DNA of 64,000 bases, taken from the IMG/VR virus record IMGVR_UViG_3300046507_000773, positions 62,001 through 126,000 of that record. One strand, 5' to 3'. Below the pieces are notes generated by a model. It was not told the origin of the DNA, ran no database searches, and saw only the letters and a list, made by a program, of their open reading frames with translations. Shown piece by piece: positions 1 through 25,550 of the stretch. Positions within the stretch are counted from its first letter, which is position 1, and each line of letters begins with the position of its first letter. The translations under genes were made by a program, and so were the position numbers.

Positions 1-874
1 TCATCGGGTTCTTGTGCGACTCCATGGCAGCACGATGGCCACCACTACCCAAAGCCTGCTGGATCTTCTGTTCACGCAAGCGCTGGTTCAAGCGCGGCAC
101 GTTCAGGATAGCAGGGTTGTCGCAGACGGTGATGAACGTCTCTTGTGCTTTACCTTCGAACGCCAGGGAGAGCGTGACGTTCTGATCGATGTTCTGGTGC
201 TTGGTATAGCCACCAAAACTCTCGAGCGAAATACTCGACATCGAAGTCGGTGTCGGCGCTTCTTTAACAACCGGGCCCAGGATCGACAGCGGACGGATGT
301 TGCCTTTGTCGTCGAAATGATCCTTGATCATCTCCATCGAAATCTGGCGACCACCATTGATTACGTCGTCCAGAGTGTTCTCCGGAATAACAGCAATGGG
401 ATAAGCGCCTTCGTCGAAAATTGCTTTACCGAGGATATCGGCGAGCTTCGGCGTTATTTTATAGTCCTTTTCCAGATGGGCTTTAATCGCAGCCATCATT
501 TCGGAGGAAACCTCCGGCGGTAAGAGCCCTTCTGCCGATGTGTAATTCAGCTCGACAGTAACCATGTCTTTCGGTGCCAGGACGGAGCTCACCAGGATTT
601 GCTTGGTGCGTTTCAGGTCCGGCAATACCTGAAGGACGGTTTTAGCATCGATGATGTCTTGTGCTTTCCGCTGGCCAATTTGTTTCAACTGGCTGACATC
701 TGGGGTGTGCGGCGAAAGGTTCCCTTTGTCGTCGTACGTTGCAGAATTATTGCCACGGATTGTCTTACTCAGGATGGCCGCCATTTCCGGGTTTTGTCGC
801 GTGAGCTTCATCACCGGGAAATGTTCACCCTGGTTGGCACTCTGTAAGGCCTGTTTGAAAGTTTCACCAGCCAT
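1..874 (-). CDS. Probable portal protein (phiKZ gp129-like), N-terminal part; runs off the left edge
   Basis: Absent from the ORF track because there is no stop in the window. Hand translation from ATG at 874 gives MAGETFKQALQSANQGEHFPVMKLTRQNPEMAAILSK...QILVSSVLAPKDM...GAYPIAVIPENTLDDVINGGRQISME. This resembles phiKZ-like portal N-termini, includes an S-x-E processing site, and is divergent from virion genes. Confidence 0.65.
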   Translation of the reverse strand, partial: MAGETFKQALQSANQGEHFPVMKLTRQNPEMAAILSKTIRGNNSATYDDKGNLSPHTPDVSQLKQIGQRKAQDIIDAKTVLQVLPDLKRTKQILVSSVLAPKDMVTVELNYTSAEGLLPPEVSSEMMAAIKAHLEKDYKITPKLADILGKAIFDEGAYPIAVIPENTLDDVINGGRQISMEMIKDHFDDKGNIRPLSILGPVVKEAPTPTSMSSISLESFGGYTKHQNIDQNVTLSLAFEGKAQETFITVCDNPAILNVPRLNQRLREQKIQQALGSGGHRAAMESHKNPM

Positions 875-906
875 TATTACAACCTCTTTAGTTTTTAGGG
901 ATAGTC

Positions 907-3339
907 GTGACTACCAACAACAGCTATCAAGACTACATGGATTCGGTGCTACAGTTGGCAGAGACGATTGTTATCAAATCGTCCGCTGCTGCTGAAGCGC
1001 TTAATCAGAAATTGGTAGAAGATTACGGGGCAAGTGTTGTTGACTCCCGCTACCCCTCTACCTGGAAGTATTACCTGAATCTTGCAGGTGAGTACCACCC
1101 CACCGATACCGTAATGACGGTCGTGTCAATGGATACATTGGAAAAAATAACTTTTTCCAAGACGAACCTCAAATTGCACCGAGCGACGGCTCGCGGCTAT
1201 GCGTTCGGTACCCGTCAATACAATTTGTTGGTATCCCAATACCCGGAACAATCTCTGCTCATCAAGGGCATCTTGAACCCGGTGGATATCGACGATGCCA
1301 TCGCAGCCGATGATGGCAAGATCCTTGGATACCCAGTAGGACTCGTAGAAGAAAACGAGTACTCCTTAATTGCCAAACTCCAGACGTGGGTAAATGGTTT
1401 TCGTGCCCGTTACGTGAACGAGCAGTTTAGTATCTCTGATTCCCTCTACACTTCATCGTGGATGGGCATCATGTACATGAACTTACCTGGCGCAATTGCA
1501 GGCTTGCGAAAGGAAGCTTGTCACACGAACGAAGCGCACAGCTACCACGTTAAACAGTACCTGGCAAGTCACGGACACCTGGACCAGTACATGGACCAGC
1601 TGACCACGAAGCAAGCTTTGTGGCTCTACCGTAACATCAGATACCTGCGCAACAACACGGGTAAGCAAGAGAACTTCGAGTGGCTCATAGAGCATATCAT
1701 GACCGAGCGTAACCTGCCCTTGGCAGAGTACAACATGCATCACGATGTCTCGGTAATGGCGGGTCACAGCGATTCGTCCATGATGCGCATGATGGCACTT
1801 GAGGCGCCGGTGGAAACTGGCTCACTCTATCCGGACATCAAATTTAAGAAGGTGCCGCTTAACCTCGGCTACAACTTGACTGACGATGATCCGGTGACGC
1901 TTGGCACCGTACTGGCGAAAGAAGATCGTTTTGCCAGGATGAACGCGAAGATCCGTTCAGTTGCACAGCCCCAGATTCAAGAGGCCATGGAGAACTCGCT
2001 CTCCAACTCGATCAAGACGAAGTTCCTCGAGTCCTCGATGGTTGACCGGAGTAACAACTCCCCGTACACGTTGGCCGACATCTTGCTCAGTCACTGGTTG
2101 TACTTGTCAGTCGAAGGAAACTATCGCGCTTTCATTGGCGTGACAAGCCCTAAAACTGGTGAGCGCATTCCACTGACGGTCAAGGATGCGTACATCTTGG
2201 TGTGGTACGCGTTCTGCCAGTCCAACGGTATCAAGATCGATACGATTCCAAAGGTTATTGCTGAGCGTGTCCAACGTCTGGATTCGCCAAGCGTCGATGA
2301 CCTGATGTCGATGGTCAGCAAGAAATACGTCTCCCGCGATATGGCCGAAGCGATTCTCGCACCGCAGCCAGTCATCGGGGACATCATCTCCACCGAAGCG
2401 TTCTATAACACCTGTCTTGAGATCTTTGACGCAGCCCAAGAGCAGCGCCGTTTGATCGCCTCGCAAGAGCATGCCAAACGTCGAGGCATGGTGTTTAACA
2501 TGGTGTCGCGGGTTTATTCCGATGCCCTCTGTACGCTCGTTGAAGATGGTGACGACGACTCGTATAAGTCCTGGTTTGCAGCCCGTAACATTGACATCGA
2601 TTCCTACTCGCAGACCGAGCTTGGTTTGCTGTATGTGAACCTCGTGCAAGAAGCAACGGGCATGAATCTGGTGACGACCAAGTCGCTCAAGGACTTGCAG
2701 TCTGCGATGGTGAGGATGCTCTCGCAGCTCTCCAGTTACAGTATTCAGATCAACGCCGACATCAACAGCTCGGATTTGCGTCTGTCTGACTGGGGCATGA
2801 TTCGTATCGGTGACGTGAAGTCGGACATGAACGACGAAGCGGCTGTCGAGATCGTGGCAACGGTTCTGAAGGCTTCGTCGCAGCTTAATGACGCAGGCGC
2901 CTTTGACGTCACGCGAGTAACACTTGGCAATGATCCAGTCGTCCAAATGAACGACCAGGTCAAGTACGACATCACAGCCAAGGTATTTGCGGGACGGGCT
3001 GATTCGGATCACGAGGGCAAGCTTAACGCTGCTCCAATTCGGATTCGTCCTATTCCGGCGCCTAAGAAGAACGCACTGGGCATCACGCCGGTGCTTGGTA
3101 TTGACCAGTACATCTTGCTGCCTGAAGAACAGCGAGTGGACTTCAATGACGTCTACGGTAACAAGTACGTGTACACCTACAAGTCCAATGGACCTGTGGT
3201 GACGCTGCCGCCGCTGTCGTCGATTGTCCCGGTCACTATCCTGAACGGCTTGACCTACGTCATTAGTGGCCCGATCCAGCAATCCGAACTGTCCAAGTCG
3301 CTGCGTAATACGTGGCTCGATGGCTTCGATAAAACCTAA
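907..3339 (+). CDS. Virion structural protein, probable baseplate component (phiKZ gp128-like)
   Basis: 810-aa ORF with the conserved-looking WKYYLNLAGEYH motif; lies next to the portal gene as in phiKZ-like phages. Confidence 0.6.
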   Translation: MTTNNSYQDYMDSVLQLAETIVIKSSAAAEALNQKLVEDYGASVVDSRYPSTWKYYLNLAGEYHPTDTVMTVVSMDTLEKITFSKTNLKLHRATARGYAFGTRQYNLLVSQYPEQSLLIKGILNPVDIDDAIAADDGKILGYPVGLVEENEYSLIAKLQTWVNGFRARYVNEQFSISDSLYTSSWMGIMYMNLPGAIAGLRKEACHTNEAHSYHVKQYLASHGHLDQYMDQLTTKQALWLYRNIRYLRNNTGKQENFEWLIEHIMTERNLPLAEYNMHHDVSVMAGHSDSSMMRMMALEAPVETGSLYPDIKFKKVPLNLGYNLTDDDPVTLGTVLAKEDRFARMNAKIRSVAQPQIQEAMENSLSNSIKTKFLESSMVDRSNNSPYTLADILLSHWLYLSVEGNYRAFIGVTSPKTGERIPLTVKDAYILVWYAFCQSNGIKIDTIPKVIAERVQRLDSPSVDDLMSMVSKKYVSRDMAEAILAPQPVIGDIISTEAFYNTCLEIFDAAQEQRRLIASQEHAKRRGMVFNMVSRVYSDALCTLVEDGDDDSYKSWFAARNIDIDSYSQTELGLLYVNLVQEATGMNLVTTKSLKDLQSAMVRMLSQLSSYSIQINADINSSDLRLSDWGMIRIGDVKSDMNDEAAVEIVATVLKASSQLNDAGAFDVTRVTLGNDPVVQMNDQVKYDITAKVFAGRADSDHEGKLNAAPIRIRPIPAPKKNALGITPVLGIDQYILLPEEQRVDFNDVYGNKYVYTYKSNGPVVTLPPLSSIVPVTILNGLTYVISGPIQQSELSKSLRNTWLDGFDKT

Positions 3340-12010: not shown

Positions 12011-12384
12011 AAATCGTTGACCGTAAAACCTTCTTGGCCCTTCCCGATGGGACGGTGTTTCGCCGCTTTCTCGAGGGTACCATTCAGGAGACTCTTGAAG
12101 TCAAGGGAAATACCACCCGCGAAATGACGGATGATTTCGCCGGAGACTTCAACACCATGGAAGTCGGTGGCCGGATCGAGATGGAAGATCCGTCGAAAAG
12201 CGAGCATGTCGCGGCCGAGAAAGCGGCTGAAACCGGTGCGAGCCTTCCCATCATGTTCGACGGATGGGGACGCGACGGCGGCTACGACGAAGAAGAGTGG
12301 TACGCTGTCTACGAAGTCCAGGAGATGGCCGCCATGATCGCGATGCTGACCAAGTGCTATGACCAAGTTATGTTCGGTAAGTAA
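12007..12384 (+). CDS. Hypothetical phage protein
   Basis: N-terminus MKIVDRKTFLALPDGTVF; ATGA overlap with the upstream gene. Confidence 0.75.
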   Translation: MKIVDRKTFLALPDGTVFRRFLEGTIQETLEVKGNTTREMTDDFAGDFNTMEVGGRIEMEDPSKSEHVAAEKAAETGASLPIMFDGWGRDGGYDEEEWYAVYEVQEMAAMIAMLTKCYDQVMFGK

Positions 12385-12386
12385 TC

Positions 12387-12426
12387 CGGCATAAAGCCCA
12401 GTGACCCCTAACGGGAGTCACTGGGC
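12387..12426. terminator. Hairpin terminator between convergent genes
   Basis: Stem GCCCAGTGAC...GTCACTGGGC; TTTATGCCG tail on the minus strand. Confidence 0.7.
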
Positions 12427-12463
12427 GATTCAAATAGTCTACTCGACTATTTTTTTTTGCTTC

Positions 12464-13156
12464 CTACTTGTGCTTCTCAGCCCAGAGCTTGTCCATGGTG
12501 GCACGGAACTTGGGCATGCGAGCGTAAATGCGTCCTGGATATCGGCTGTTGATTTCGCAGAACGATTCACCGTAACCGGCTACCTTGACAGTCGCCTGGG
12601 GGCACTGGGTATCCAGATTACGATCCCAGAGCTTGGGATTGCAGTCCGGTTGTGAACGGCAGAGGCGCTGACGCTTTGCAACACTGCCGGCGCCGCCATT
12701 ATAGGCCGCTCCGTCGCATTTTAAAGCGTTGGTGCTGTCTGCCATCAAGATTGCACAAGAACGGTGCTGAGCCTTGTTTTTGAGGATTACAGCACGCATC
12801 TGGAAACGGACAGCTTGGCAGTCACGCCAGTTCCATTCAGCCAGGTCTTTGCTCAGCCGTTTAGTCTCGGCAAGTGCGTCGAAACGCACGTTACCTTTAA
12901 CGTCAGTGGCGAGCGTGAATTGACCCAGGCCACAACCCAGTTCACGGGAAGTCTTCAGCGTAGCCGTCGGTTTCCAGTTGCTTTCCTGGTCGATGAGGCC
13001 GGCCGGGAAAACGTAGTCTGGAATGTCGGGCCAGTACGTGATGGTTTCTTCCACCAGCTGGGGCAGAAGCTTCGGGGATTCACCGGGAAGCTTGACATCT
13101 GCCAGAGCAGTCGAACTCAGCAGTACGAGGAAGAAAGCGAGAAAAAGCTTCTTCAT
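12464..13156 (-). CDS. Secreted SLT-family lytic transglycosylase (endolysin candidate)
   Basis: Start MKKLFLAFFLVLLSSTALA is a signal peptide. Motifs QESNW, GLGQF and AAYNGG; 8 Cys. Confidence 0.85.
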   Translation of the reverse strand: MKKLFLAFFLVLLSSTALADVKLPGESPKLLPQLVEETITYWPDIPDYVFPAGLIDQESNWKPTATLKTSRELGCGLGQFTLATDVKGNVRFDALAETKRLSKDLAEWNWRDCQAVRFQMRAVILKNKAQHRSCAILMADSTNALKCDGAAYNGGAGSVAKRQRLCRSQPDCNPKLWDRNLDTQCPQATVKVAGYGESFCEINSRYPGRIYARMPKFRATMDKLWAEKHK

Positions 13157-13536
13157 ACGAACTCGCACAGTTTCATGAGCACCCAGAAGCGCATGACGTA
13201 CAGGCCGATGTTCACCAGGTACACGACGAGGGTTCCGTGTTCGTGCGTCTTGAGGTCGTTGACCATCGCTTGGAAATCGATCTTCGGCGAGACGGCCAGA
13301 CGAATCCACAGCAGCGAGACTTCGAACCAGGTCATGATCGACACGGCGCGGAAGATGATGAGCAGTTCGGGGAACTTGCCCACGATGTCACTGCCACCGA
13401 AACGACCAGCTTGCACCAGCAGCTCGAGACAGAGGCCAGCCATCAGCGTCATGCCGATGAGCCAGAAGGAACGCACAGCGGTGCGCTTGAACATGCTACC
13501 GAATTTGGTAGCGAAGAACTTTTGGAAGAAATGCAT
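13153..13536 (-). CDS. Holin-like multi-pass membrane protein
   Basis: Three hydrophobic segments; translationally coupled to the SLT gene. Confidence 0.55.
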   Translation of the reverse strand: MHFFQKFFATKFGSMFKRTAVRSFWLIGMTLMAGLCLELLVQAGRFGGSDIVGKFPELLIIFRAVSIMTWFEVSLLWIRLAVSPKIDFQAMVNDLKTHEHGTLVVYLVNIGLYVMRFWVLMKLCEFV

Positions 13537-13545
13537 GGTGTACTC

Positions 13546-13857
13546 CTAACGGGGTTTAGTTGGGTTGGCAGAAAGCTTGCAATGGTCTTTCTGAAATTCA
13601 TCGAGCAGCTTACAGAGGACACATCCCCACATTCGCTTCTCTTGCATCGCGTAATAAGCGCGAGTGCTGATGTACTCGTTGAAGGAGCCATTGAGCAAGA
13701 CGTTACCCGTCAAGTCAAAGGCCTTGTAGATGTCCCACGCCTTGAGGGGGTTCCACAACGCAGCGCCCACGATCCGCAAAGCGGCCAGTGGGAGACAGGC
13801 GATAATGAACAGTCCCACCGCAAGTGCGACGAGGCGCATGCGAATCGCTTGAATCAT
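13546..13857 (-). CDS. Small phage membrane protein often found beside lysis/tail genes
   Basis: TM N-terminus and pattern D..GNVLLNG...E.IS.RA...WGCVLCKLLD...DHC. Confidence 0.65.
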   Translation of the reverse strand: MIQAIRMRLVALAVGLFIIACLPLAALRIVGAALWNPLKAWDIYKAFDLTGNVLLNGSFNEYISTRAYYAMQEKRMWGCVLCKLLDEFQKDHCKLSANPTKPR

Positions 13858-13919
13858 GGCGTTCTCCTTACAAAAAAAATGCCATAAAATGACGGTATTT
13901 TTTCCACCGGGAAATTGAA

Positions 13920-13947
13920 CAGCATAAACGGGGACCCGAAGGTCCCC
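13920..13947 (-). terminator. Terminator after the tail-fibre operon
   Basis: GGGGACC-CGAA-GGTCCCC hairpin (UUCG loop on the minus strand) followed by GTTTATGCTG. Confidence 0.75.
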
Positions 13948-13952
13948 ATTCA

Positions 13953-16055
13953 TTAGGCCACCTGAACCAGGCGAACCGGACGGCAACGAAGCGTCGTCGT
14001 CTTTGCCGAATAGTTTTCCGTACCAGCCGAGCTCATGAGCTTGGTCTTGGCTTGGTAGTAGTAATCGGTGTGATACGCACCTGGCGTGTAACTCACGACA
14101 CCGTAGGCCTGATACTGGCAAGACCAACGCGTTGTGTTAAGCGAACCAGGCTGACCGTTGGGGCCGATACTGAAGAAGTAACCGACGCTTTGGTTGACTA
14201 CAGTACCTTTGCTGCACGAGGCAGGCGGGCTCGATGGATCACTTGGGCCGTACCAGGCAGACGCCGAGTAAGGACCGTCGGTCTGCGTGTAGTAACCGTA
14301 GTTCGGGGTCGACGCATCCTGGTAGGTGTTACTCCAGTTATACGCCGTGCTCGTCCAGTAGTAACCCGTTTCCAGGAACGCTTCTGCACCACCCGCCTTG
14401 TAAGCAGCCGGAGCCGTCGCCAGACTTGGGCGCATGGTCGTCCAGATGAGTTGCAGAACTTTCAGAGCCGGAACTTGCCAATCATTAAAGCCGCCGATTG
14501 TCAAGCCCTTCACCGTGTTGACCACAGTGCCCGCATTCGAACTTGCCACCAGTGCAGTCGTGTTCGCCGTCGAATCATTGTCCGACGTATTGAACGTCTG
14601 AGCAACGCTGGAAGTGAGCGGGGCGGAAATCTCTGCAGACTTCGGCGCCACGATCACAGCGAAAGTACCCACGCCGATTTGGATGTCACCAGCGTAGAAA
14701 CCACCACCGAACGTTTGACCCACCACGGTAGGACGCGGGTCCCACTTAGCGATGAACGACACATCCGCTGTCCAAGCCGAGTAACCGTACTTCGCACCGC
14801 GATGGCGTGCACGAGCGTAGTACGTTCCGTTTTGCACCAAGATGCCCGGAGCGACATTGATCGTGAGCTTGTTGACCAGATCGTTGACCGACGACCAGAC
14901 ACGCGTGCCAGAACCATTCGGACCCGTCCACACTTCCCAATCCGTTCCTGCATGGGTATCGGTGCTGCCGATGACCGCAAATGCAGTAGTCGTAATGGTT
15001 GGCGTTTCCGTGTTCGTCTGTGCTCCTGGCGTAGGTGCTGTGAGCGACGGTTGCTTGATGCTGATGCTGGCCGTGCTGAACGACGTAGCAACAGACCAAT
15101 CGGACCACACGCCTTCGATGTCCTGATAGCGGCATCGCCAGTAGAACGTCGTACCCGGCGGGAAGAGCGTATCGGGTTTGAACGACAACGCAGCCGCAAT
15201 CGTCTTGTCGTACAGCAGGTTCGAGAAGTCAGGCGTGGTCGATACCTGGAACTGCGCTGCACCTTGCGGTACACCGTAGAGACTCTGGTAGCGATACGTC
15301 ATGAGAGGCGACTCCAACGGCACATTGGAATCACTCGGGATGGGTGAGATGTTCAGCGGCTGACGAACGACTGCCAGTTGTTTTGCCACGTCACTTGCCA
15401 GAGCAAAGGTCGGATGGGGATTCGCTGCATCGATGTGTTGCTGCATCGTACCCGAAGCACCTGCGCCACTTACCGTTTCCGCGTCACTCAACGCCCGCTT
15501 GATGAAGTCCGACAACGCCTGCTGCGCTGCTTGATTGCCGGTTGCGACCGCGACCTTCAAGCGCTTAATGGCTTCCACCAAATGCGCCATGCCGTAGATC
15601 GTGATCGAATGCTGCTTGTGCGCTTTTGGATTAAAGAGCTCAGGCACCCCAACCAGATCAGTGAATGGAATGTCTTCGCCATCGACGTCGACGGAATCGA
15701 CGATTTGAATCAGCGCTCGGCGGGAAGTGCTTTCCTCACCACCCAGAACCTGGTAGGTAAGTTCCACAGGACCCATCACGTTTTCATCCGTAATGAGAAC
15801 GATCGCACAGATCGACTTCCCGTATTTGGCAGTTAAGGCAACGTCCATTTCACTGGGGCGAAATTGCACACCCGGTGTCAAGGGCTGACCAGAGGCAAGG
15901 TCTTTGACATGCATGGTCTTGCCGAAGAACAGGCCGTAATCTGGGAGTACGGCCCGTACCTTCCTACCGTTGAGCGCATGGGATTCTCCTGAGACTTTGT
16001 TGGATGCTTTCACACCCGTTTCGTCCAAGGGATATTTCAAGAGAATATCCGACAT
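13953..16055 (-). CDS. Tail fibre / receptor-binding protein paralog 4 (attachment domain, 2 FN3-like repeats, DUF1566/CLec-like tip with large insert)
   Basis: N-terminal YPLDETG..N.V.GE motif; FN3-like YWRCRY..WSDWS and YARARH..YSAW; tip motifs GGFYAG, GFNDWQVP, YWTST and RCRPVRLV. Confidence 0.8.
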   Translation of the reverse strand: MSDILLKYPLDETGVKASNKVSGESHALNGRKVRAVLPDYGLFFGKTMHVKDLASGQPLTPGVQFRPSEMDVALTAKYGKSICAIVLITDENVMGPVELTYQVLGGEESTSRRALIQIVDSVDVDGEDIPFTDLVGVPELFNPKAHKQHSITIYGMAHLVEAIKRLKVAVATGNQAAQQALSDFIKRALSDAETVSGAGASGTMQQHIDAANPHPTFALASDVAKQLAVVRQPLNISPIPSDSNVPLESPLMTYRYQSLYGVPQGAAQFQVSTTPDFSNLLYDKTIAAALSFKPDTLFPPGTTFYWRCRYQDIEGVWSDWSVATSFSTASISIKQPSLTAPTPGAQTNTETPTITTTAFAVIGSTDTHAGTDWEVWTGPNGSGTRVWSSVNDLVNKLTINVAPGILVQNGTYYARARHRGAKYGYSAWTADVSFIAKWDPRPTVVGQTFGGGFYAGDIQIGVGTFAVIVAPKSAEISAPLTSSVAQTFNTSDNDSTANTTALVASSNAGTVVNTVKGLTIGGFNDWQVPALKVLQLIWTTMRPSLATAPAAYKAGGAEAFLETGYYWTSTAYNWSNTYQDASTPNYGYYTQTDGPYSASAWYGPSDPSSPPASCSKGTVVNQSVGYFFSIGPNGQPGSLNTTRWSCQYQAYGVVSYTPGAYHTDYYYQAKTKLMSSAGTENYSAKTTTLRCRPVRLVQVA

Positions 16056-16072
16056 GCAAATGCTCCTAATTG

Positions 16073-17932
16073 TTAAGTGAGGCTCTTGAGATTGATCAAG
16101 CGTACTGCTCGCACAATCTGGCTGGTGGTTTTAACGGCTGGCGTAGGCACGCTGTTGTCCAGCATCGAGTGCGACACGGCCTGGTAAAGGGTCGTGCCAT
16201 TCGATGCCACGTCTTCAGCAGTCGAACTCCAGTAACTCGTTCCCGTTGCCAAGGTTTCAGAACCGCCAGATGCAAACGTCGCTGGGATGCCCGATGCGGT
16301 CGGTCGCAAGAACTCGAAGATCTTCTTGAGAACGCCTTCAGAAGGAATCTGCCAATCCGTGTAGCCGCCCGTTGACAACCCTTTCACATAATTCGCCGCA
16401 GGGGAGTTACCCGCCGTGTAGAACTGCGAAGTGTTGTAGACAGCATCGAGCACCTCGTACGCCGCAATACGCGTATTGACGCTTTGCAGAGCGAGCGAAC
16501 TTTCCGTCGACTTGGGAGCCAGCACGATCGCAAAATCGTTCCGGTCAATGGTGACGGTGCCTGCAAAGAGACCGCCTTGGAAGGCAGTACCGATTGCCGT
16601 TGGCAAGAAGACGTTGGCCGTCATGAAGACGCAGTCGTCGGTCCACTGCGAAGAACCGTTGGCCGCACTGTTGTGACGGGCACGTGCGTAGTACTTGGTA
16701 CTTGCCGCCAGTTTGCTTGCTGCCACCGTGATCGATGTTTTGTTCGTCGTGTCGTTGAGCGAAGAGAACACGATAGTGCCGCTACCGTTAGGACCGGTCG
16801 ATACCTGCCAGTCGGTAGAAGCATGCGTGTCATTCACACCCAGCGTTGCAAATGCCGTCGTTGCCAGAACAGGTGTTGCACCCACGGCGGTTGCATTGTT
16901 ACCTGGACGCGTCATCGAAGGCGACACGATACCCGAAGCAATCGTCACAAAGCTCGTCACTTGCGACCACTCGGACCAAGCGAGTTCTTCGCTACGGTAA
17001 CGGCAACGCCAGTAGTAACGGCGACCCGGATCGAGGACACCAGCAAAAGCCGTCGTGTAACCGGCGTAAGTATTCGTTTTGTCGAACACCACACTCGTGA
17101 AAGCTGCGTCGGTAGCAATCTGGAACTGCGCCCCGTTTTGCTCCTCTTCGTACAGGCCGAAGTACTTGCCGCCGTGCAGATTGATGTTGGTTCGCGAAAC
17201 GTTCGCAGCACCATCGACAGGCGACTGGTTCACCGGAGGACGCACCATCGGCACCGCTTTAGCGATGTCAGCAATGCGAGCGTATTGCGGGTGCACGTTC
17301 GGATCATCCGTGTGCTGTTTGATCTGGACCTGGACCGAGTTACTCGAATCACGAGCAATCGTGTCCGCATTTGTCTTGGCGTAATCCTTGATCGCGTCGG
17401 TGTACTTTGGATCGTAGTCGATCTTGTCGGTAGCCAGTCGGTTGATTGCCATGACGGCGATCTCGTGGCCGCTTACCACACCTTTGTAAAACTGCGGACC
17501 TTCCGTGCTGAGTTGCTCAACAGGAGTTAGCAGAGCCTGCCAATCACTGGAGCGATCGTTCTTCACACGGCGTTTCAAAAGGTCGACGATGTTCTGTGCT
17601 GATACTGCAAAGTCCCCGCCCAATACCTGATAGTTGACAGCCACTTCGTTGATGGAAGTATCCGTCACCACGATAAGACCGGCTACCGTCTTACCGAAAC
17701 GCGCCGAGGGCACATCGTAGCGATACGCCACGTAATACTGCGTGCCGTACGTGAGAGGCAAGCCGTTGGCCGTATTGACCACCGAAATGCCGTCACGAAA
17801 GAAAGCGCCGTATTTAGGAGCGATCACACGCAGCTTCAGATCCGGTGGGAACGGGTAACGCTCCCCTGCCACCTTGTTATTGACGCTGGTGCCCGTGGGG
17901 TCCAGCGGATAACCGAAAGTGTCTGTTGCCAT
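16073..17932 (-). CDS. Tail fibre / receptor-binding protein paralog 3 (no insert)
   Basis: Same architecture: YPLDPTG, VHPQY, 2 FN3-like repeats, GYTDWQIPS, YWSST and VRAVRLI. Confidence 0.8.
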   Translation of the reverse strand: MATDTFGYPLDPTGTSVNNKVAGERYPFPPDLKLRVIAPKYGAFFRDGISVVNTANGLPLTYGTQYYVAYRYDVPSARFGKTVAGLIVVTDTSINEVAVNYQVLGGDFAVSAQNIVDLLKRRVKNDRSSDWQALLTPVEQLSTEGPQFYKGVVSGHEIAVMAINRLATDKIDYDPKYTDAIKDYAKTNADTIARDSSNSVQVQIKQHTDDPNVHPQYARIADIAKAVPMVRPPVNQSPVDGAANVSRTNINLHGGKYFGLYEEEQNGAQFQIATDAAFTSVVFDKTNTYAGYTTAFAGVLDPGRRYYWRCRYRSEELAWSEWSQVTSFVTIASGIVSPSMTRPGNNATAVGATPVLATTAFATLGVNDTHASTDWQVSTGPNGSGTIVFSSLNDTTNKTSITVAASKLAASTKYYARARHNSAANGSSQWTDDCVFMTANVFLPTAIGTAFQGGLFAGTVTIDRNDFAIVLAPKSTESSLALQSVNTRIAAYEVLDAVYNTSQFYTAGNSPAANYVKGLSTGGYTDWQIPSEGVLKKIFEFLRPTASGIPATFASGGSETLATGTSYWSSTAEDVASNGTTLYQAVSHSMLDNSVPTPAVKTTSQIVRAVRLINLKSLT

Positions 17933-17956
17933 TCTTTACTCCTGCTTGAATAGAAA

Positions 17957-17976
17957 AGGGAGGCCGAAGCCTCCCC
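17957..17976 (-). terminator. Intrinsic terminator between fibre genes
   Basis: GGGAGGC-CGAA-GCCTCCC hairpin with a U-tract on the minus strand. Confidence 0.7.
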
Positions 17977-17978
17977 GC

Positions 17979-20147
17979 TTATGACGCATTGGTCACATCC
18001 ACCAAGCGCACTGCACGCACAGTCAAGGCCGTAGTCTTGTCGGTGAGCACCGGTGCTGCCGTACCGCCAAAGGCAAATGCATAACCTTGGTAGTAGTAGT
18101 TGGTGTAGTAATGCGTGACAGTTGGCGTGTAGCCCGAGATGTACGTGTCGTTGACCAGCACACCGCAGGTCCAGCTTGCACTCCAGTAGCCGATGCGGGT
18201 GTCGCCAATCGAGTTGCCTGATGGGCTGAAGCTTGGACCATCCACATTATTCGGACCAGTCTGTCCCGAGCCACACTTGACGTAACCGTTATAGTTGACC
18301 GATTCACCGGTCGGACCATAGTCAAACGAGTGAGACTGCTCCTGGTAGTAGGTATCCGTCTCGTAGATCGGATCGCCACCAGTGGTATAACTGCCTTGCG
18401 TCGTGTAGTCGGATGTCGTCGAGGACCAGTAGTTTGCAGCCGTCGAGAACGATTCCGTACCACTGGACGAGAACGCAGTCGGGACACCAGGCGCACTTGA
18501 ACGCAGATTGGTCCGCACCACAGCCAGCACATCTTTCGACGGCACTTGCCAGTCGGTGTAACCTGCGATGTTCAAACCGCGCACAAATGTCGCTGCTGCA
18601 CTTGCGTTCGTACCGACGAGTGCTGCCAGGCCGTTGGTGTCAGCAATCGAATCGTAGGTCGACACGGACCCCGGCGTTGCCACGAGAGCACCTGCCAGTT
18701 TGGTTGCGGTCTTCTCACCCAATGCCTTCGGTGCCACAATGATCGAATACGTACGACCACCGTAAGTGATGTCACCACCCCAGTAACCACCCTGGAAGAG
18801 TTGACCCATCACCGTCGGACGAAGCGGCCAGATAGCGTAGAACGAAGCGCCAGTGGACCAAGCAGAGTAACCGTACTTGGTTGCTTTGTAGCGAGCACGT
18901 GGATAGAACGTGTTTAAACGCGTCAGGACGCCTTTCGGCACCTTGATTGAGGTCTTGTTGGTCGTGTTGCCAACGGACGTCCACACGAGCGTTCCTGTGC
19001 CATTTGGACCCGACCAGATTTCCCAGTCAGTGCTCTGATGCGTATCCACGTCGCCCACCACCTGGAACGTTGTAGCGGTCAGCGTCGGTTCTTCGGTATC
19101 GGTATTCGCACCGCCCGTTGGGGCAGTGATGATCGGAGCCGTCACACTCACAGCCATGGTGGTGAAAGTGGTCGGGGTGGACCAGTTCGTGACGTTACCG
19201 AATTCATCCGTGTACCGGCAGCGCCAATAGTAGATCTTGGCCGATTCCAACACGTCGCCGTAGTGGAACGAATTGACGTTACCGGTCAAGGTCACATCAA
19301 TTGCTGGGGTGTCAGAGAAGTCGACAGTCTTGGATACCTGGAACTGCAGGCCGGCTTGACCCTGGCGATACAGTGCGTAGAACGCACCGGCTTGCAAGGT
19401 GACATCGAGGGCCACGTCTTTCTGACCGTTGCCAGGCATCACATTGCTGGGAGTACGCAAGGGGGCGATGTACTTGCCGATGTCCACAGTCTTTACGTAC
19501 TGTGGGTGAGCATCTTGGTTTGCGTTGTGCGCTGCCAAAAGGCCTGCCATCGTAGCGGCGCCGTTTTCACTCAGGCTAGCCAGTTCCGAATCCACGAACG
19601 AGTACAACGAGTCGGCACTGATGCGCACAGACAACTGGTGCAACATCCGAAGCCGCTCCATCCCTTGAGCCAGACCATCGAAGTTGTAGAAGTCGCCGAT
19701 GTCGTGGAAGTGCATGCTCGGCGTGAATTCATCCGGGATGCCATCCACATTACCGTACAGCACCGAACGGTTATCGTTCGAGATGCGGGAAGACAGCTGT
19801 ACGACGTCTTCGGAGTGGTTCATGTAAGCACCACCCACGGCTTGGTAAGTCAGGTTCACCGTGTCACTTACCGCAGGGTTCGTAATCACGATGACGCCAT
19901 AAACACCTTTACCGGTGCGCTTGGTAACCATTTGTCGCAGCGAGTCGAAGATGTAGTCCTTACCATGTTCGAGTGGCTTTAACGAATAAGCGTCTTGCAG
20001 CACAACAGTGTCACCGTAGAAGGCACCGTACTTGGGTACGATGGTTCGGCGGTTCTTTGTGTCGAGTTTGCAGACTTCACCAGGCACCCGGTTGTTCCTG
20101 TCCTTACCCGTAGGGTCGAACTGGAAGCGAACAATCGGAGGGGCCAT
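17979..20147 (-). CDS. Tail fibre / receptor-binding protein paralog 2 (large insert in tip)
   Basis: FQFDPTG, AHPQY, 2 FN3-like repeats, GGYWGG, GYTDWQVPS, YWSST and VRAVRLV. Confidence 0.8.
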   Translation of the reverse strand: MAPPIVRFQFDPTGKDRNNRVPGEVCKLDTKNRRTIVPKYGAFYGDTVVLQDAYSLKPLEHGKDYIFDSLRQMVTKRTGKGVYGVIVITNPAVSDTVNLTYQAVGGAYMNHSEDVVQLSSRISNDNRSVLYGNVDGIPDEFTPSMHFHDIGDFYNFDGLAQGMERLRMLHQLSVRISADSLYSFVDSELASLSENGAATMAGLLAAHNANQDAHPQYVKTVDIGKYIAPLRTPSNVMPGNGQKDVALDVTLQAGAFYALYRQGQAGLQFQVSKTVDFSDTPAIDVTLTGNVNSFHYGDVLESAKIYYWRCRYTDEFGNVTNWSTPTTFTTMAVSVTAPIITAPTGGANTDTEEPTLTATTFQVVGDVDTHQSTDWEIWSGPNGTGTLVWTSVGNTTNKTSIKVPKGVLTRLNTFYPRARYKATKYGYSAWSTGASFYAIWPLRPTVMGQLFQGGYWGGDITYGGRTYSIIVAPKALGEKTATKLAGALVATPGSVSTYDSIADTNGLAALVGTNASAAATFVRGLNIAGYTDWQVPSKDVLAVVRTNLRSSAPGVPTAFSSSGTESFSTAANYWSSTTSDYTTQGSYTTGGDPIYETDTYYQEQSHSFDYGPTGESVNYNGYVKCGSGQTGPNNVDGPSFSPSGNSIGDTRIGYWSASWTCGVLVNDTYISGYTPTVTHYYTNYYYQGYAFAFGGTAAPVLTDKTTALTVRAVRLVDVTNAS

Positions 20148-20231
20148 TTAGTTGCTCCGTAAAAGGAAATTAAAGGGTTGACGTAATAACTGCCCGTAGC
20201 AGCCCATGTCGGACCGCTACGGGCAGACGGA

Positions 20232-20876
20232 TTAGCTAGGCCAACCGGTGGTGACGTCGTAAGCGTTGATTTCGTCGACAGTCTTCATGCGCGAGATGTT
20301 GACCGAGTGCTGGGACTCGACTGCGAAGCACTGCTGCACATGGGTCGCCATCTGGAAACCGACGAGTTTCAGTTCTTCGTAGTTCAGGGTCATGAACAGC
20401 CCCGGCGCCGCTTTGAACTGCACCGACTGGATGGACGGATAACGTTCCATGTTGGTCAGGGCAGCGTTGACGCGATCCTGGTCATCCTTTTCTGCCGGGA
20501 AGTACAGCGTACCCTGGAGCACTTGCGTACCCAGGTGACCACTGAAGCCGACGCCTTTCGCTTCGCTCTTTTGACGAGCCAGTTTCAGGTCGTCGTATTT
20601 CTTGTTGCGAGCGATCGTGACGCGGGTCGACATCTCGGCAGCGCGCGCTTCGATGTACTGAACCTGGGTCAGCACTTCCAGAATGCCATGCGTCGTACCC
20701 GGTACGCCGTCGTCGCAGGTGCCGTAGAAGATCGGCTGTTCGGTCGGGTATTGGGATTCGAGTGCGAACCCGAATTGCAGACCAGGGATGTCCGGATTCT
20801 TCGGACCGTGCTTCGACGCTTCGGTCGTGACGGGAATACCGGTCACGGAGTCGATGTAAGTGAAACGGATGAACAT
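20232..20876 (-). CDS. Tail fibre assembly/chaperone-like protein (DUF4376-like C-terminus)
   Basis: C-terminal HVQQCFAVE...INAYDVTTGWP pattern; lies within the fibre cluster. Confidence 0.6.
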   Translation of the reverse strand: MFIRFTYIDSVTGIPVTTEASKHGPKNPDIPGLQFGFALESQYPTEQPIFYGTCDDGVPGTTHGILEVLTQVQYIEARAAEMSTRVTIARNKKYDDLKLARQKSEAKGVGFSGHLGTQVLQGTLYFPAEKDDQDRVNAALTNMERYPSIQSVQFKAAPGLFMTLNYEELKLVGFQMATHVQQCFAVESQHSVNISRMKTVDEINAYDVTTGWPS

Positions 20877-20884
20877 GTTTTTCC

Positions 20885-23203
20885 TTAGGAAGAAATTTTA
20901 ACGCGACGGATTGCACGGACACGAGCAACAGTGTCAGTCACCGAAATCGGACCAGTACCAGCTTGCGTATCGGTATCCACCTTGCGCATGGCCATGCACT
21001 GCTTCTGACCATTCGAGATAATCGAAGAGCTGTAGTAGAAGTTGTCCCCGAACGCTTCGGTGCCTCCCGACATGAACTGGGTCACGGTCGTCTGGGCTGG
21101 ATTGACGGCGGTATAGTTACCCGTCGTCGGAACCGAAATCGTGTTCTGACCGAAATTGGTGTAGTTCAGGTCATTCGTGGGCTTGAGGTTGCGGTAAAGC
21201 ATCTCGAGTTCCATGATCGACGGAATGTACCAATCGCTGTAACCGCCGATGGTCAGGGATTTCGCCCAGGCTGCAGCTTGACCCGAAGTAGCAAGCGTGT
21301 TAGCGCGGCCATCGGTTTGGCTGTTCGGCGTCGTGCTTCCCCATTCCTTCAGGTTTTCACCCGAAGACTTAGGCGAGATGATCAGAGCGAACGTTGCCAG
21401 CTGACCAGTTGCCGGATCGGTCTGCGTCATGCGACCAACGTAGTAGCCACCTTGGTAAGGCGTACCGGGAACGGTCGGCAGGAATGCTGCTGCCGTCGTG
21501 AACTGCACATCGTTCGACCACTGGGAAGCACCCAGGTTAGTACCGTTGTGACGAACACGCGTGTAGTACGTCGTGCTGACGGCCAGGCGACCAGTCGGGA
21601 CAGCGATTGCCGTCTTGTTCTGGGTATCGCCGATCGAAGCGTAGACGCGAGTGCCTGTGCCGTTCGGGCCAGTCCAGATTTCCCAGTCGGCCGATGCTTG
21701 CGTATCGGTTGCACCAGTCACTGCAAAGGCGCTCGACTTGATCGTCATGCCGTCCTGGATGTTGATGTCACCATCTGCCGGAGACGTTACCGAAGGTTTC
21801 GTCACCACACCAGTCGTCGTGAAGACAGCATCGTTCGACCAGGCCGAAGCACCTGCACCGGCTGCGTTATGACGAACGCGAGCGTAGTACGTGATGTTCG
21901 GATTCAAGACACCAGCTGCAACCTGGTAGCTGGTCTTGGCACTGGTGGAACCTGCCACGTTCAGAACACGTTGACCCGTGCCACCAGGTCCGGTCCAGAT
22001 TTCCCAGTCCGAAGAAGCATGGGTATCCGAACCGCCCGTCACACCGAAAGCGGTGGAAGCCAGGTTTGGCGCTGTCGAGATGTTCGTCGAGCCATTGGCA
22101 GGGGACGTCATCGTCGGTTGGTTCACGATGATGGAACCCGTCGAGAATGCAGTCGGGACCGACCAGTCGGACCAGGTGCCTTCCGAATCGCGGAAGCGGC
22201 AACGCCAGAAGTACGCGACGTTGGCAGCGAGAAGGCCCGTGGTCACAGCGAACGAACTCACAGCACCCAGGGTACCGGAGTCGACGACGATGTTGGCCGA
22301 GAAGTCCTGGTTACGGGACACTTGAAATTGTGCGCCGTTTTGTGCCAGGCCGTACAGCGTGTAATACGGACTTGCAGTCAGCGTCGTGGTTTGGCTCACG
22401 TTGGTAGCTGCAGCAGCTGGGGTTACGTTCTTCGGTTGACGAACAGCGCCGACAGCGGTGTTGATCAAGAGACGCGCACGCTCGGCCGTCAGGTACTGGC
22501 TGTGTGGATCTTGGGCGCCCAGGTGGTTCGTGATGGCAGTTGCCACCGTATCGGTAGCCATCTGCTGCGCTTGTGCTTTGGTCGGGGCACCAGTTTGCTG
22601 TGCAGTGACGCGGTGCGGATTGCTGAAGTCGTTCAGGTGGGACGCGAGGTCATCGTTGCTCTTTTGCGAGATGGCCACTTCGATGCTCTGAATACCGGCC
22701 GTCACCTCCTTCATGCCGGTCAGATCGTCGGTATCGTGACTGTGGTCAGCCGACGGGAAAGAAGCAGGCAGGTTCACTACACGGTCCCAGGAGGTAACAC
22801 GGGGGTTGTGTACCTTGTCGGACATGACCTTCGTCCAGGCTGCTTCGTTCAGCGCCCATTGACCGCCCACACACTGATAGCTCAGGGTCACGATGCCTTG
22901 CAGCGCCGTATTGAGGAAGGTGATCGAACCGAAGATGTCGGCAGCAGTTGCGAGTGATGCATCGATGAAACGATGCGAGAACGCGAAGTCCTGGCCGAGC
23001 ACCAGGGGGCGCACGGTACCATCAGTCGTCTTGATCGACGCCGTGAAGCCATTCGCATAGAAAGGAGCGAAGAACGGCACGACGAAATTGAATTGCGTAT
23101 AGTCAGCAGGCAAAACGATTTGCTGCTCACCAATGACCTTGTTGGAAACCGCAGTACCCGTGGTGTCTTCAGGGTAAGTAGCGGTGGGGAAAACAGTTGA
23201 CAT
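20885..23203 (-). CDS. Tail fibre / receptor-binding protein paralog 1 (3 FN3-like repeats, no insert)
   Basis: YPEDTTG, NPHRVTAQQ, DPHSQY, three FN3-like repeats, GGYYVG, GYSDWYIPSIMELE and VRAIRRV. Confidence 0.8.
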   Translation of the reverse strand: MSTVFPTATYPEDTTGTAVSNKVIGEQQIVLPADYTQFNFVVPFFAPFYANGFTASIKTTDGTVRPLVLGQDFAFSHRFIDASLATAADIFGSITFLNTALQGIVTLSYQCVGGQWALNEAAWTKVMSDKVHNPRVTSWDRVVNLPASFPSADHSHDTDDLTGMKEVTAGIQSIEVAISQKSNDDLASHLNDFSNPHRVTAQQTGAPTKAQAQQMATDTVATAITNHLGAQDPHSQYLTAERARLLINTAVGAVRQPKNVTPAAAATNVSQTTTLTASPYYTLYGLAQNGAQFQVSRNQDFSANIVVDSGTLGAVSSFAVTTGLLAANVAYFWRCRFRDSEGTWSDWSVPTAFSTGSIIVNQPTMTSPANGSTNISTAPNLASTAFGVTGGSDTHASSDWEIWTGPGGTGQRVLNVAGSTSAKTSYQVAAGVLNPNITYYARVRHNAAGAGASAWSNDAVFTTTGVVTKPSVTSPADGDINIQDGMTIKSSAFAVTGATDTQASADWEIWTGPNGTGTRVYASIGDTQNKTAIAVPTGRLAVSTTYYTRVRHNGTNLGASQWSNDVQFTTAAAFLPTVPGTPYQGGYYVGRMTQTDPATGQLATFALIISPKSSGENLKEWGSTTPNSQTDGRANTLATSGQAAAWAKSLTIGGYSDWYIPSIMELEMLYRNLKPTNDLNYTNFGQNTISVPTTGNYTAVNPAQTTVTQFMSGGTEAFGDNFYYSSSIISNGQKQCMAMRKVDTDTQAGTGPISVTDTVARVRAIRRVKISS

Positions 23204-24587: not shown

Positions 24588-25550
24588 TTACACGTTCGGA
24601 GCCTGAATCGGTTGGTCCGATACAACCTTTTGGGCATGCAGGGTGTTACCGACACTGACGCCTTTCGTGACGTCCACGTCAGCACCAAAAGTCGCCTTAC
24701 CAGAACCGCCACCGCCCGCTGCTGTCGTCATGTTGCCTTGCAGCGCCAGCATGCCAATTTCAGTGAGATCACCTTGGTGTTGCGTTTTCGATTCGATCGT
24801 CCAGGTATCGTTCTTGGTCGTCATGGTCGAGGTCGCCGTATTGATCTGCTCAGTACCATGCATGTTGATGACCTTGGATTCCATGCTGATCTCGTCGGCA
24901 GCGAAGAGGCGCATCTTTGTTTTCGTAATCTCCACGATCGAGCCATCGGCGTTCTTCATTTCCAGATGGTTCTCTTTCGAGTCCATGCTGATGTAGTTAC
25001 CGATGTTGTCCTTGATCACGACATTGCCGTCGCCACCATTGATCTGAAAGTCGTACGAATACGCTTCCCCATTGGCTTGCGAGGTGTGCAGCGTGATTGC
25101 CTTCTTGTGACTGGACAGTTCCAGGAAGTAAGTGTTCTCAGCCGTGGGCTTGACGTCTTCATCCGGGCAACCCGAGATCGCCAGGATCATGGTTTCCAGA
25201 CGGCGCAGGCTGATGTCACCGATGTCGGTCCAGTAAAGGTTATCCGTGTCGTCAGCGAACTGGAAAACCATCACGGGTTCACCGCGACGTACATCCGGGG
25301 GCAAGAACCGGTTCGAGTTACCGAAGGGCAGCCAAGTGGCCGACAAGGTAATCGTGGTATCGGCTTTGAGTTTGAACTTGCCGCCTAAGGAATCCTCACC
25401 TTCTGCTTCGTAGGTTTGGACGTCATCCGTGATCTCGCCATCGGCTCCCGTTGAAACCTCTGCGGGCCAGAATTCGATACGGATACTGTCGAGTGCTTTG
25501 TTTGCGGCGACCTTTCCGTACGAATAAAAGTGGAACTTAGAAACGTTCAT
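24588..25550 (-). CDS. Baseplate central spike (gp5/gpV-like; phiKZ gp164-like)
   Basis: OB-fold motif ATWLP..SNR..PPDVRRGEPV followed by beta-helix-like repeats. Confidence 0.7.
   Translation of the reverse strand: MNVSKFHFYSYGKVAANKALDSIRIEFWPAEVSTGADGEITDDVQTYEAEGEDSLGGKFKLKADTTITLSATWLPFGNSNRFLPPDVRRGEPVMVFQFADDTDNLYWTDIGDISLRRLETMILAISGCPDEDVKPTAENTYFLELSSHKKAITLHTSQANGEAYSYDFQINGGDGNVVIKDNIGNYISMDSKENHLEMKNADGSIVEITKTKMRLFAADEISMESKVINMHGTEQINTATSTMTTKNDTWTIESKTQHQGDLTEIGMLALQGNMTTAAGGGGSGKATFGADVDVTKGVSVGNTLHAQKVVSDQPIQAPNV

Follow-up and report, generated by a model that had tools for sequence, protein, structure and literature searches.

The 64,000-nt window analyzed here represents bases 62001–126000 of the 226,810-bp IMG/VR virus record IMGVR_UViG_3300046507_000773, which is estimated to be 86% complete and is listed as linear. 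At positions 13953–23203 on the minus strand it contains four tandem paralogous fibre genes, termed A, B, C and D; B, C and D show 33–36% identity to A. The tip domains of A and C each contain an insert of about 100 residues, and the question raised by this locus is what these inserts represent. An earlier note on this DNA, made from the sequence, described them as antibody-like stalks that carry swappable, disulfide-closed knobs. The present analysis points to a different architecture. With a probability of about 0.55, the insert is a rigid beta-rich insertion module that extends the receptor-binding face of a lectin-fold fibre tip. What is new here is the ~100-residue beta module on a known type of receptor-binding tip, that of the DUF1566/C-type-lectin fold. 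This is unusual, but not revolutionary.

The lectin-fold tip and the inserted segment

Each insert is situated between the YW[ST]ST motif of the DUF1566 domain and a YQA or YQG motif (Table 1). At the same site B has 11 residues between YWSST (567–571) and YQA (583), and D has a short loop on a diverged scaffold. There are exactly two Cys residues in the insert of A and exactly two in that of C. Both inserts display a P-x-Y motif (TPNY in A, DPIY in C), an (S/G)YTP motif and a Tyr-rich segment (YHTDYYYQ in A, THYYTNYYYQ in C). The Tyr content is 14–15% in the inserts and 3.5–5% in the rest of the proteins, an approximately 3-fold enrichment. The earlier note gave the positions of the inserts, their lengths (96 and 108 residues, with 11 in B), the two Cys in each and these motifs, and the open reading frames (ORFs) and motif coordinates agree with it on all of these points.

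When the inserts of A and C alone are compared by BLASTP the similarity is weak (E 0.077). An alignment of a profile of six A-type inserts with a profile of nine C-type inserts has a probability of 94.8% and an E-value of 5.5e-8, extends end to end over 89 columns and brings both Cys into register; identity between the inserts of A and C is 24%. By this alignment the two inserts are homologous, and the motif grammar that the earlier note had seen in these divergent segments is not due to chance. Relatives were sought by a word-indexed search and by an exhaustive profile search of 1.84 billion representative proteins. These contain 1,460 DUF1566 matches, and the insert is found in about 25–30 clusters only, all of them metagenomic and most with the same fibre N-terminus. 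One family of 37 insert-bearing tip domains was assembled, all from metagenomic phage contigs, with insert lengths of 84–151 residues (median 99). P-x-Y is present near the start of the insert in 37/37, and a loose (G/S/D)(Y/W/H)xx pattern, which serves as a proxy for the G-Y-T-P turn, is matched somewhere in all 37. The family member P0002 is an ortholog of C and is 81% identical to it over the tip. In 50,697 records of isolate phages, neither nucleotide nor protein searches reveal a relative of the tip; the N-terminal domain alone is shared. A Pfam search with the inserts alone gives no match.

The Cys pair is conserved. Two Cys are present in 33 of the 37 inserts, four in one, one in one and none in two, i.e., the count is even in 36/37, which favours a disulfide. 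The spacing of the two Cys across the family is 25–39 residues. In the aligned domains the first Cys column is occupied by Cys in 30/32 and the second in 29/32, and two family members have lost both residues together, as would be expected of a disulfide-bonded pair. The insert with four Cys (P0014, a relative of A) has its extra two in strand 2 and beside the second conserved Cys (W-C-C), at matching heights that would fit a second cross-strand disulfide. A has a third Cys outside of the insert, Cys691 (positions 13980–13982), in the last core strand (R-C-R-P-V-R). It is kept in A orthologs and lost in C, B and D, and we take its site to be that of the Cys in the V-R-C-V-R ending that is usual in DUF1566 domains.

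The remainder of the tip has the characteristics of a DUF1566/Lcl_C domain. The sequence motifs tested were G-G-x-x-D-W-x-[LIV]-P, YW[ST]S[TS] and a terminal V-R-x-V-R; DWQVP, YW[ST]ST and VRAVRL are present in A–C and in canonical insert-less members from the profile search. The record contains a fifth tip copy outside of the window, E, a stand-alone protein that consists of a tip with an insert; its tip is 60% identical to that of C. The insert is therefore present in three of the five tip copies of the record (A, C and E). The Pfam family Lcl_C (PF07603) matches A–E with E-values of 8e-7 to 3e-3, and the match is split by the insert in A, C and E. The scores, 18.3–25.4 bits for A–D and 29.7 bits for E, do not reach the gathering cut-off of 34.9 bits. 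Searches of PDB sequences with the family profile and with the B tip give no genuine match, and Lcl is not linked by sequence.

Structural comparison is more informative. The AlphaFold2 model of the A tip superposes by VIA-align on the C-terminal domain of Legionella Lcl (8q4e) with a Z score of 12.8 and a root mean square deviation (rmsd) of 3.2 Å over 121/131 residues at 22% identity. It also matches a Bacteroides fimbrial protein (Z 12.1), the tip of Bdellovibrio Bd2740 (8oks, Z 9.8) and, at Z 6–8, dozens of C-type lectin domains, invasin/intimin, TvpA (6.9) and Mtd (6.1). The C tip model matches DUF1566 models in AlphaFold DB (E 3e-11) and Lcl_C clusters in the ESM Atlas (150–174 residues, rmsd 1.7–2 Å). 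Matches in AlphaFold DB, the ESM Atlas and BFVD are to insert-less DUF1566 proteins only, aligned over 150–175 residues. On these models the tip has a C-type-lectin fold of the Lcl/Mtd kind, the same fold as that of the solved DUF1566 member, and the lectin-like tip assumed in the earlier note is confirmed by these comparisons. The EPN/QPD and WND Ca/sugar motifs of Ca-dependent C-type lectins are not found on reading the tip sequences. Lcl and Bd2740, which likewise have none of these motifs, represent trimeric lectin-fold heads of fibres (PMC11162425, PMC10769870).

The best matches in the PDB sequences are to antibody light chains (E 0.1–1.4). They represent a chance G-G-Y-x-x-W / S-G-x-P-x-x-F stretch and do not support a relationship to antibodies.

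Predicted structure and evolution of the insert

The tips of A and C were modeled from different alignments, strands were assigned by DSSP, and domain numbering was converted to protein numbering by adding 437 (A) or 439 (C). Both models display five strands of 13–24 residues in the insert region, with a 15-residue loop as the sole non-strand element besides tight turns. In A the strands are at residues 565–579, 583–602, 618–630, 636–657 and 661–673, and the Pro-rich loop is at 603–617. In C they are at 572–589, 593–614, 630–647, 650–673 and 677–692, and the loop at 615–629 contains the first Cys. Strand 1 of C begins in the core at YWSST and is followed by a G-G-D turn, after which strand 2 opens with P-I-Y. 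A G-D turn joins strands 3 and 4, and strand 4 holds the second Cys in W-T-C. The T-P-T turn, which represents the GYTP motif, joins strands 4 and 5, and the Tyr-rich strand 5 re-enters the core at YQG. The two models agree on the strands and the loop despite the low identity of the inserts. The motifs fall at tight turns, and the conserved grammar (GGD-PIY, GYTP) thus marks hairpin turns. The predicted inserts are neither disordered nor ordinary compact globular domains, as the earlier note had anticipated, and their very long strands are modeled at values of 92–95 in the predicted local distance difference test (pLDDT). The same note had proposed a check for an extended hairpin; the very long strands are there, but they number five and do not form one two-stranded stalk with a terminal knob.

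The core strands that flank the insert form an antiparallel hairpin in insert-less relatives, with a loop as short as 5 residues. Given this antiparallel arrangement and five strands, one of the four strand connections cannot be a reversal. The 15-residue loop alone is long enough for this, and from the strand lengths it would have to run back along the sheet. Residues 159–229 superpose loosely on the dodecin beta-alpha-beta-beta fold (VIA-align Z 3.4), which is used as a hint of a crossover only. In the models the conserved turns would be roughly 10–15 strand residues, or about 30–50 Å, away from the core, and the variable parts would be nearer the base. The two Cys would be at the same height within one or two residues in both models. 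From the strand registers together with the Cys conservation, Cys614 and Cys646 in A, and Cys625 and Cys661 in C, probably form a disulfide.

The insert has no structural relative at a useful score in the PDB, AlphaFold DB, the ESM Atlas or BFVD. Searches of the ESM Atlas by features and by structure give template modeling scores (TM-scores) of 0.35 or less, the best VIA-align Z is 3.8, and Foldseek comparison with the PDB gives E-values of 0.1 or worse. The weak Foldseek matches are to pore stems, class II fusion proteins and phage tube hairpins, whose common trait is very long strands.

Two loci, L008 (~85% protein identity) and L009 (about 50–60%), are syntenic with the fibre cluster. A comparison with L008 shows a ratio of nonsynonymous to synonymous substitution rates (dN/dS) of 0.09 in the insert of A and 0.26 in that of C, as compared with 0.07–0.16 in the lectin scaffold, the shaft and the N-terminal segment. 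Purifying selection acts on both inserts and is somewhat relaxed in that of C. In the family as a whole, the module is most variable and richest in insertions and deletions (indels) in its middle (C residues 604–653), and the core loop after the insert is equally variable. Inserts have a mean pairwise identity of 0.30, and cores one of 0.42. When contigs from four soil samples are compared, the differences are ordinary transitions at a density of about 1%, which is no higher in the inserts than outside of them, and they show no adenine bias. A match to the reverse transcriptase family RVT_1 is absent at E<=1 from the 226.8-kb record (estimated 86% complete), and blastn at word size 7 with all five tips against the genome reveals no template repeat, but paralogs only, at 68%. 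The hypervariability proposed for the inserts is contradicted by the dN/dS values, by single nucleotide polymorphisms as frequent as elsewhere and by the lack of a retroelement.

In a tree constructed from the core alone, the insert-bearing domains are all on one side of a single branch, and the insert has essentially a single origin. B and its ortholog B8 nest deep in the insert-bearing clade, next to domain 1 of P0017 (support 100/90). P0017 is the positional ortholog of B in L009, and it has a 79-residue insert at the same place. This nesting, together with the insert-bearing ortholog, shows that the module was cleanly deleted from B. In the pair P0025 and P0026, inserts that are 65% identical are found on cores that are 39% identical, more than 5 standard deviations off the trend, which implies at least one recombination between insert and core. 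The idea of swappable inserts is thinly supported: there is this one clear mosaic pair, together with essentially one origin and one loss.

Possible function and competing explanations

The reading favoured here is as follows. The A and C inserts are diverged copies of one insertion module, placed between the YW[ST]ST strand and the next core strand of the DUF1566/Lcl_C domain, i.e., at the distal tip of the fibre. The module would form a rigid all-beta projection of five very long strands, which make two long hairpins and a third strand pairing. The tight turns of the hairpins would carry GGD-P-I-Y and G-Y-T-P, the 15-residue connection would return along the sheet, and the conserved Cys pair probably staples this connection to strand 4. 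The module may enlarge the receptor-contacting side of the tip with a surface rich in Tyr, Thr, Ser and Gly, and differences between A, C and E, which are concentrated in the middle of the module, may give each fibre its own specificity. A genome carries several paralogous versions of the module. Their diversity comes from the duplication of genes, which then diverge slowly under purifying selection, and from the occasional deletion (as in B) or recombination, and not from targeted hypermutation.

Several points weigh against this. Strand lengths are the only basis for the distance between the two Cys, the order of the strands and the direction in which the module projects. Conservation within the module is highest in the turns expected to be farthest from the core, and the fastest-evolving stretch of A is the core loop after the insert, with a dN/dS of 0.58; with conserved far turns and a fast core loop, specificity could reside at the base or in the core and not at the tip of the projection. 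In addition, because the cytoplasm in which virion proteins fold is reducing, a disulfide could form only at a late stage.

The same features suggest a serious rival, an architectural role, which is possible although clearly less probable than a receptor-contacting extension. Three modules would pack around the fibre axis in a trimer as a spike or prism that stabilizes or caps the tip, and the core loops would bind the receptor. The strong purifying selection, the conserved turn motifs at the far end, the fast evolution of the core loop in A and the presence of Tyr on both strand faces (as read from the sequence) are in accord with such packing, as are the trimeric tips of Lcl and Bd2740 (PMC11162425, PMC10769870). 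However, the monomer models are already confident alone, B and D presumably function without the insert, and the stand-alone tip protein E keeps it.

A stronger version of the receptor-binding reading is that the insert is a previously undescribed, self-contained, one-disulfide beta-finger binding module, which jumbo phages would graft onto lectin-fold fibre tips and occasionally exchange between scaffolds, and which, as a paratope-like but germ-line-encoded surface, would alone set receptor choice. This is unlikely, a little more so than the architectural role.

Less probable again is the architecture described in the earlier note, a single Tyr-rich two-stranded stalk with a variable, exchangeable, disulfide-closed terminal knob that reaches recessed receptors, as in the bovine ultralong third complementarity-determining region of the antibody heavy chain (CDR H3). 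The long strands, the conserved Cys pair, the variable and indel-rich middle of the module and the mosaic pair P0025/P0026 all agree with it, but the five long strands and single 15-residue loop in both models leave no separate knob domain. The Cys-bearing middle is predicted to fold back along the strands, and the conserved P-x-Y and GYTP motifs are found in the hairpin turns at the far end. The dN/dS values of 0.09–0.26 and the single origin of the insert on the core tree also argue against an exchangeable knob. The knobs of cattle antibodies contain several disulfide pairs. A single Cys pair is present here, in contrast to those disulfide-rich knobs (PMC7498065, PMC10523490). What stands of the antibody analogy is the idea of a projecting, Tyr-rich, disulfide-stabilized element; the architecture, the variability and largely the exchangeability do not carry over.

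It is very improbable that the long hairpins insert into the host outer membrane in the manner of pore-forming toxin stems. The best Foldseek matches, which are non-significant, are the stems of lysenin, aerolysin and anthrax protective antigen, but the E-values are 0.1 or worse and the TM-scores about 0.15. The composition of the strands is polar and aromatic, and they lack the hydrophobic alternation seen in membrane hairpins; membrane insertion was rejected on this composition. Least probable of all, and also rejected, is that the Tyr/Asn/Thr-rich segments are variable regions of a diversity-generating retroelement: phage DUF1566 lectin-fold domains are known retroelement targets (PMC8143477, PMC5758913) and the composition superficially resembles mutagenized AAC codons, but the record has no reverse transcriptase match, no template-like repeat and ~1% transitions without adenine bias, its 86% completeness leaving a small doubt.

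A comparison of the favoured reading, a rigid module on the receptor-binding face, with known systems shows likenesses and differences. In canonical C-type lectins the long-loop region lies between adjacent core strands, opposite the termini, on the usual ligand side. The order of secondary structure in the A and C models fits an elaboration at that side. However, the canonical long loop is irregular, Ca-binding and about 30–40 residues in length, in contrast to the 84–151 residues of long regular strands in this family. The Lcl C-terminal domain, the best structural match of the tip core, is similarly lectin-like without Ca/sugar motifs and forms the trimeric head of a fibre-like adhesin (PMC11162425). 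It differs in that it is bacterial, has a collagen stalk, has neither an insert nor a disulfide, and binds glycosaminoglycans through a basic surface. The Bd2740 tip is similar in that fibre tips are mixed and matched on similar shafts, and another Bdellovibrio fibre tip, Bd1334, has a single disulfide (PMC10769870); Bd2740 is also bacterial, and it is a compact lectin domain of 110 residues with no long beta insertion.

Among systems of binding-site variation, Mtd of the Bordetella phage BPP-1 and TvpA have the lectin fold and use its distal face to display binding residues; in Mtd this fold forms the tip of a phage fibre. There, a reverse transcriptase and template repeat vary a short C-terminal region, whereas neither is found here and the module is a conserved one of ~100 residues. 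The bovine ultralong CDR H3 is also a long Tyr-rich beta projection that carries a disulfide-stabilized binding surface (PMC10523490, PMC7498065), but this is an analogy only. It has another scaffold, a two-stranded stalk, a separate multi-disulfide knob and somatic diversification, as opposed to five strands, one Cys pair, germ-line inheritance and purifying selection in the fibre insert. According to an earlier survey, FGS-type lectin-fold domains are absent from the 224 jumbo phages that it covered (PMC7824862).

Receptor-binding tips decide the host range of phages. Most known lectin-fold tips are compact domains, and retroelements diversify some of them. The fibres described here show another route, in which a large and conserved projection made of strands only is added on the apparent ligand-binding side of the fold. 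The natural pairs with and without the insert (B and its L009 ortholog; A, C and E in comparison with B and D) can be used to test what the extension contributes. If the module binds by itself, it could be a small scaffold for engineered binders.

Fibre genes, source phage and the stand-alone copy

Table 1. Fibre genes, tip domains, inserts and associated features. Positions are those of the window, except where marked G000, which denotes coordinates of the whole record.
Feature	Position	Strand	Remarks
Fibre paralog A, 700 aa	13953–16055	-	N-terminal baseplate-attachment domain, immunoglobulin/fibronectin type III (Ig/FN3)-like shaft, DUF1566 lectin-fold tip with insert
Tip domain of A, residues 442–700	13956–14732	-	AlphaFold2 pLDDT 94.9, predicted template modeling score (pTM) 0.77
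Insert of A, 96 aa, residues 571–666	14058–14345	-	Between YWTST (566–570) and YQA (667)
Cys646 of A	14118–14120	-	Second insert Cys, RWSC, middle of strand 4
Cys614 of A	14214–14216	-	First insert Cys, loop between strands 2 and 3
Fibre paralog B, 619 aa	16073–17932	-	Architecture as A; 11-residue loop at insert site (16187–16219)
Fibre paralog C, 722 aa	17979–20147	-	Architecture as A, tip with insert
Tip domain of C, residues 444–722	17982–18818	-	AlphaFold2 pLDDT 92.5, pTM 0.68
Insert of C, 108 aa, residues 578–685	18093–18416	-	Between YWSST (573–577) and YQG (686)
Cys661 of C	18165–18167	-	Second insert Cys, SWTC, strand 4
Cys625 of C	18273–18275	-	First insert Cys, in loop
DUF4376 tail-fibre-associated protein, 214 aa	20232–20876	-	Between D and C; PF14301 E 1.2e-11; phrog_10508 'tail fiber protein'
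Fibre paralog D, 772 aa	20885–23203	-	Extra shaft repeat, diverged DUF1566 tip without insert
Baseplate assembly protein	24588–25550	-	Adjoins fibre cluster; phrog_3216 E 3.1e-83
Fibre-like protein, 1189 aa	G000 222350–225919		Upstream of E, terminator-like hairpin between
E, 288 aa	G000 225963–229		Across contig junction
Gp38-family protein (T-even adhesin), 271 aa	G000 244–1059		Follows E; PF05268 46.6 bits, cut-off 25

The fibre proteins are headed by an N-terminal domain of ~200 residues that matches phrog_2163, 'virion structural protein' (E 8.6e-46 on residues 1–215 of A, 1e-45 on C). It is found in all of A–D, with E-values from 5e-35 to 1e-45. In a tblastn search this domain is matched in 202 jumbo-phage records; in the 40 records listed, the match is to query residues 1–235. 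The same type of N-terminus heads virion or tail-fibre proteins of Burkholderia phage FLC9, Ralstonia phage RP12, and Klebsiella, Xanthomonas and phiKZ-like Pseudomonas phages. The nearest isolate shows only 35–40% identity, and the nearest isolate match of the baseplate assembly protein is phage FLC9, at 40% identity. A–D have both features that characterize baseplate fibres of phiKZ-like jumbo phages, the phrog_2163 N-terminus and the baseplate gene neighbourhood. The N-terminal domain and the adjoining baseplate gene thus identify A–D as baseplate-attached fibres of an uncultured jumbo phage, which substantiates the earlier assignment of these genes as tail-fibre paralogs. The public runs that hold the sequence of the record are rhizosphere metagenomes. 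The source of the genes is an uncultured rhizosphere jumbo phage that is a distant relative of the phiKZ-like phages.

A has a match to Ig_Rha78A_N that is below the Pfam cut-off. The DUF4376 gene keeps its position in the syntenic relatives L008 and L009. A 193-aa ORF at positions 13546–14127 on the minus strand shares 175 bases with the 3' end of A. Its family matches are confined to residues 92–189, so the true start is probably an internal Met and there would be no overlap with A.

The tip of D (20885–21490) is by far the most diverged part of the cluster in comparison with L008, with 18–52% identity relative to about 90% in the shaft and a dN/dS of 0.33–0.90. It is probably a recombinational replacement, and it may represent the real host-range hot spot.

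The stand-alone copy E is found where the two ends of the record meet. The ends (G000 1–210 and 226601–226810) repeat each other over 210 bases with one mismatch, which shows that the assembly closes on itself, i.e., is circularly permuted or terminally redundant, although the record is listed as linear with a completeness of 86%. E and the Gp38-like protein that follows it have the first ~19 residues in common (MPLM-SA-RRK-S-P-L), and P0023 and P0026 start similarly. On these sequences, E and the Gp38-like protein look like a pair of alternative, detachable adhesins that share an N-terminal docking peptide. The loci L010, L006 and L007 also bear on this arrangement of the 1189-aa protein, E and the Gp38-like protein. 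Stand-alone tip proteins are represented by E, P0022, P0023 and P0026, and the whole tip, including these proteins, moves as a module.

Tips are also found in tandem. The positional ortholog of B in L009 (P0017, positions 12241–16308 of that locus, 1355 aa) has four tandem DUF1566 tips, the first with the insert and three without. Other relatives (P0008, P0009 and P0010) have two or three tandem DUF1566 tips, and the arrays thus reach four tips per fibre.

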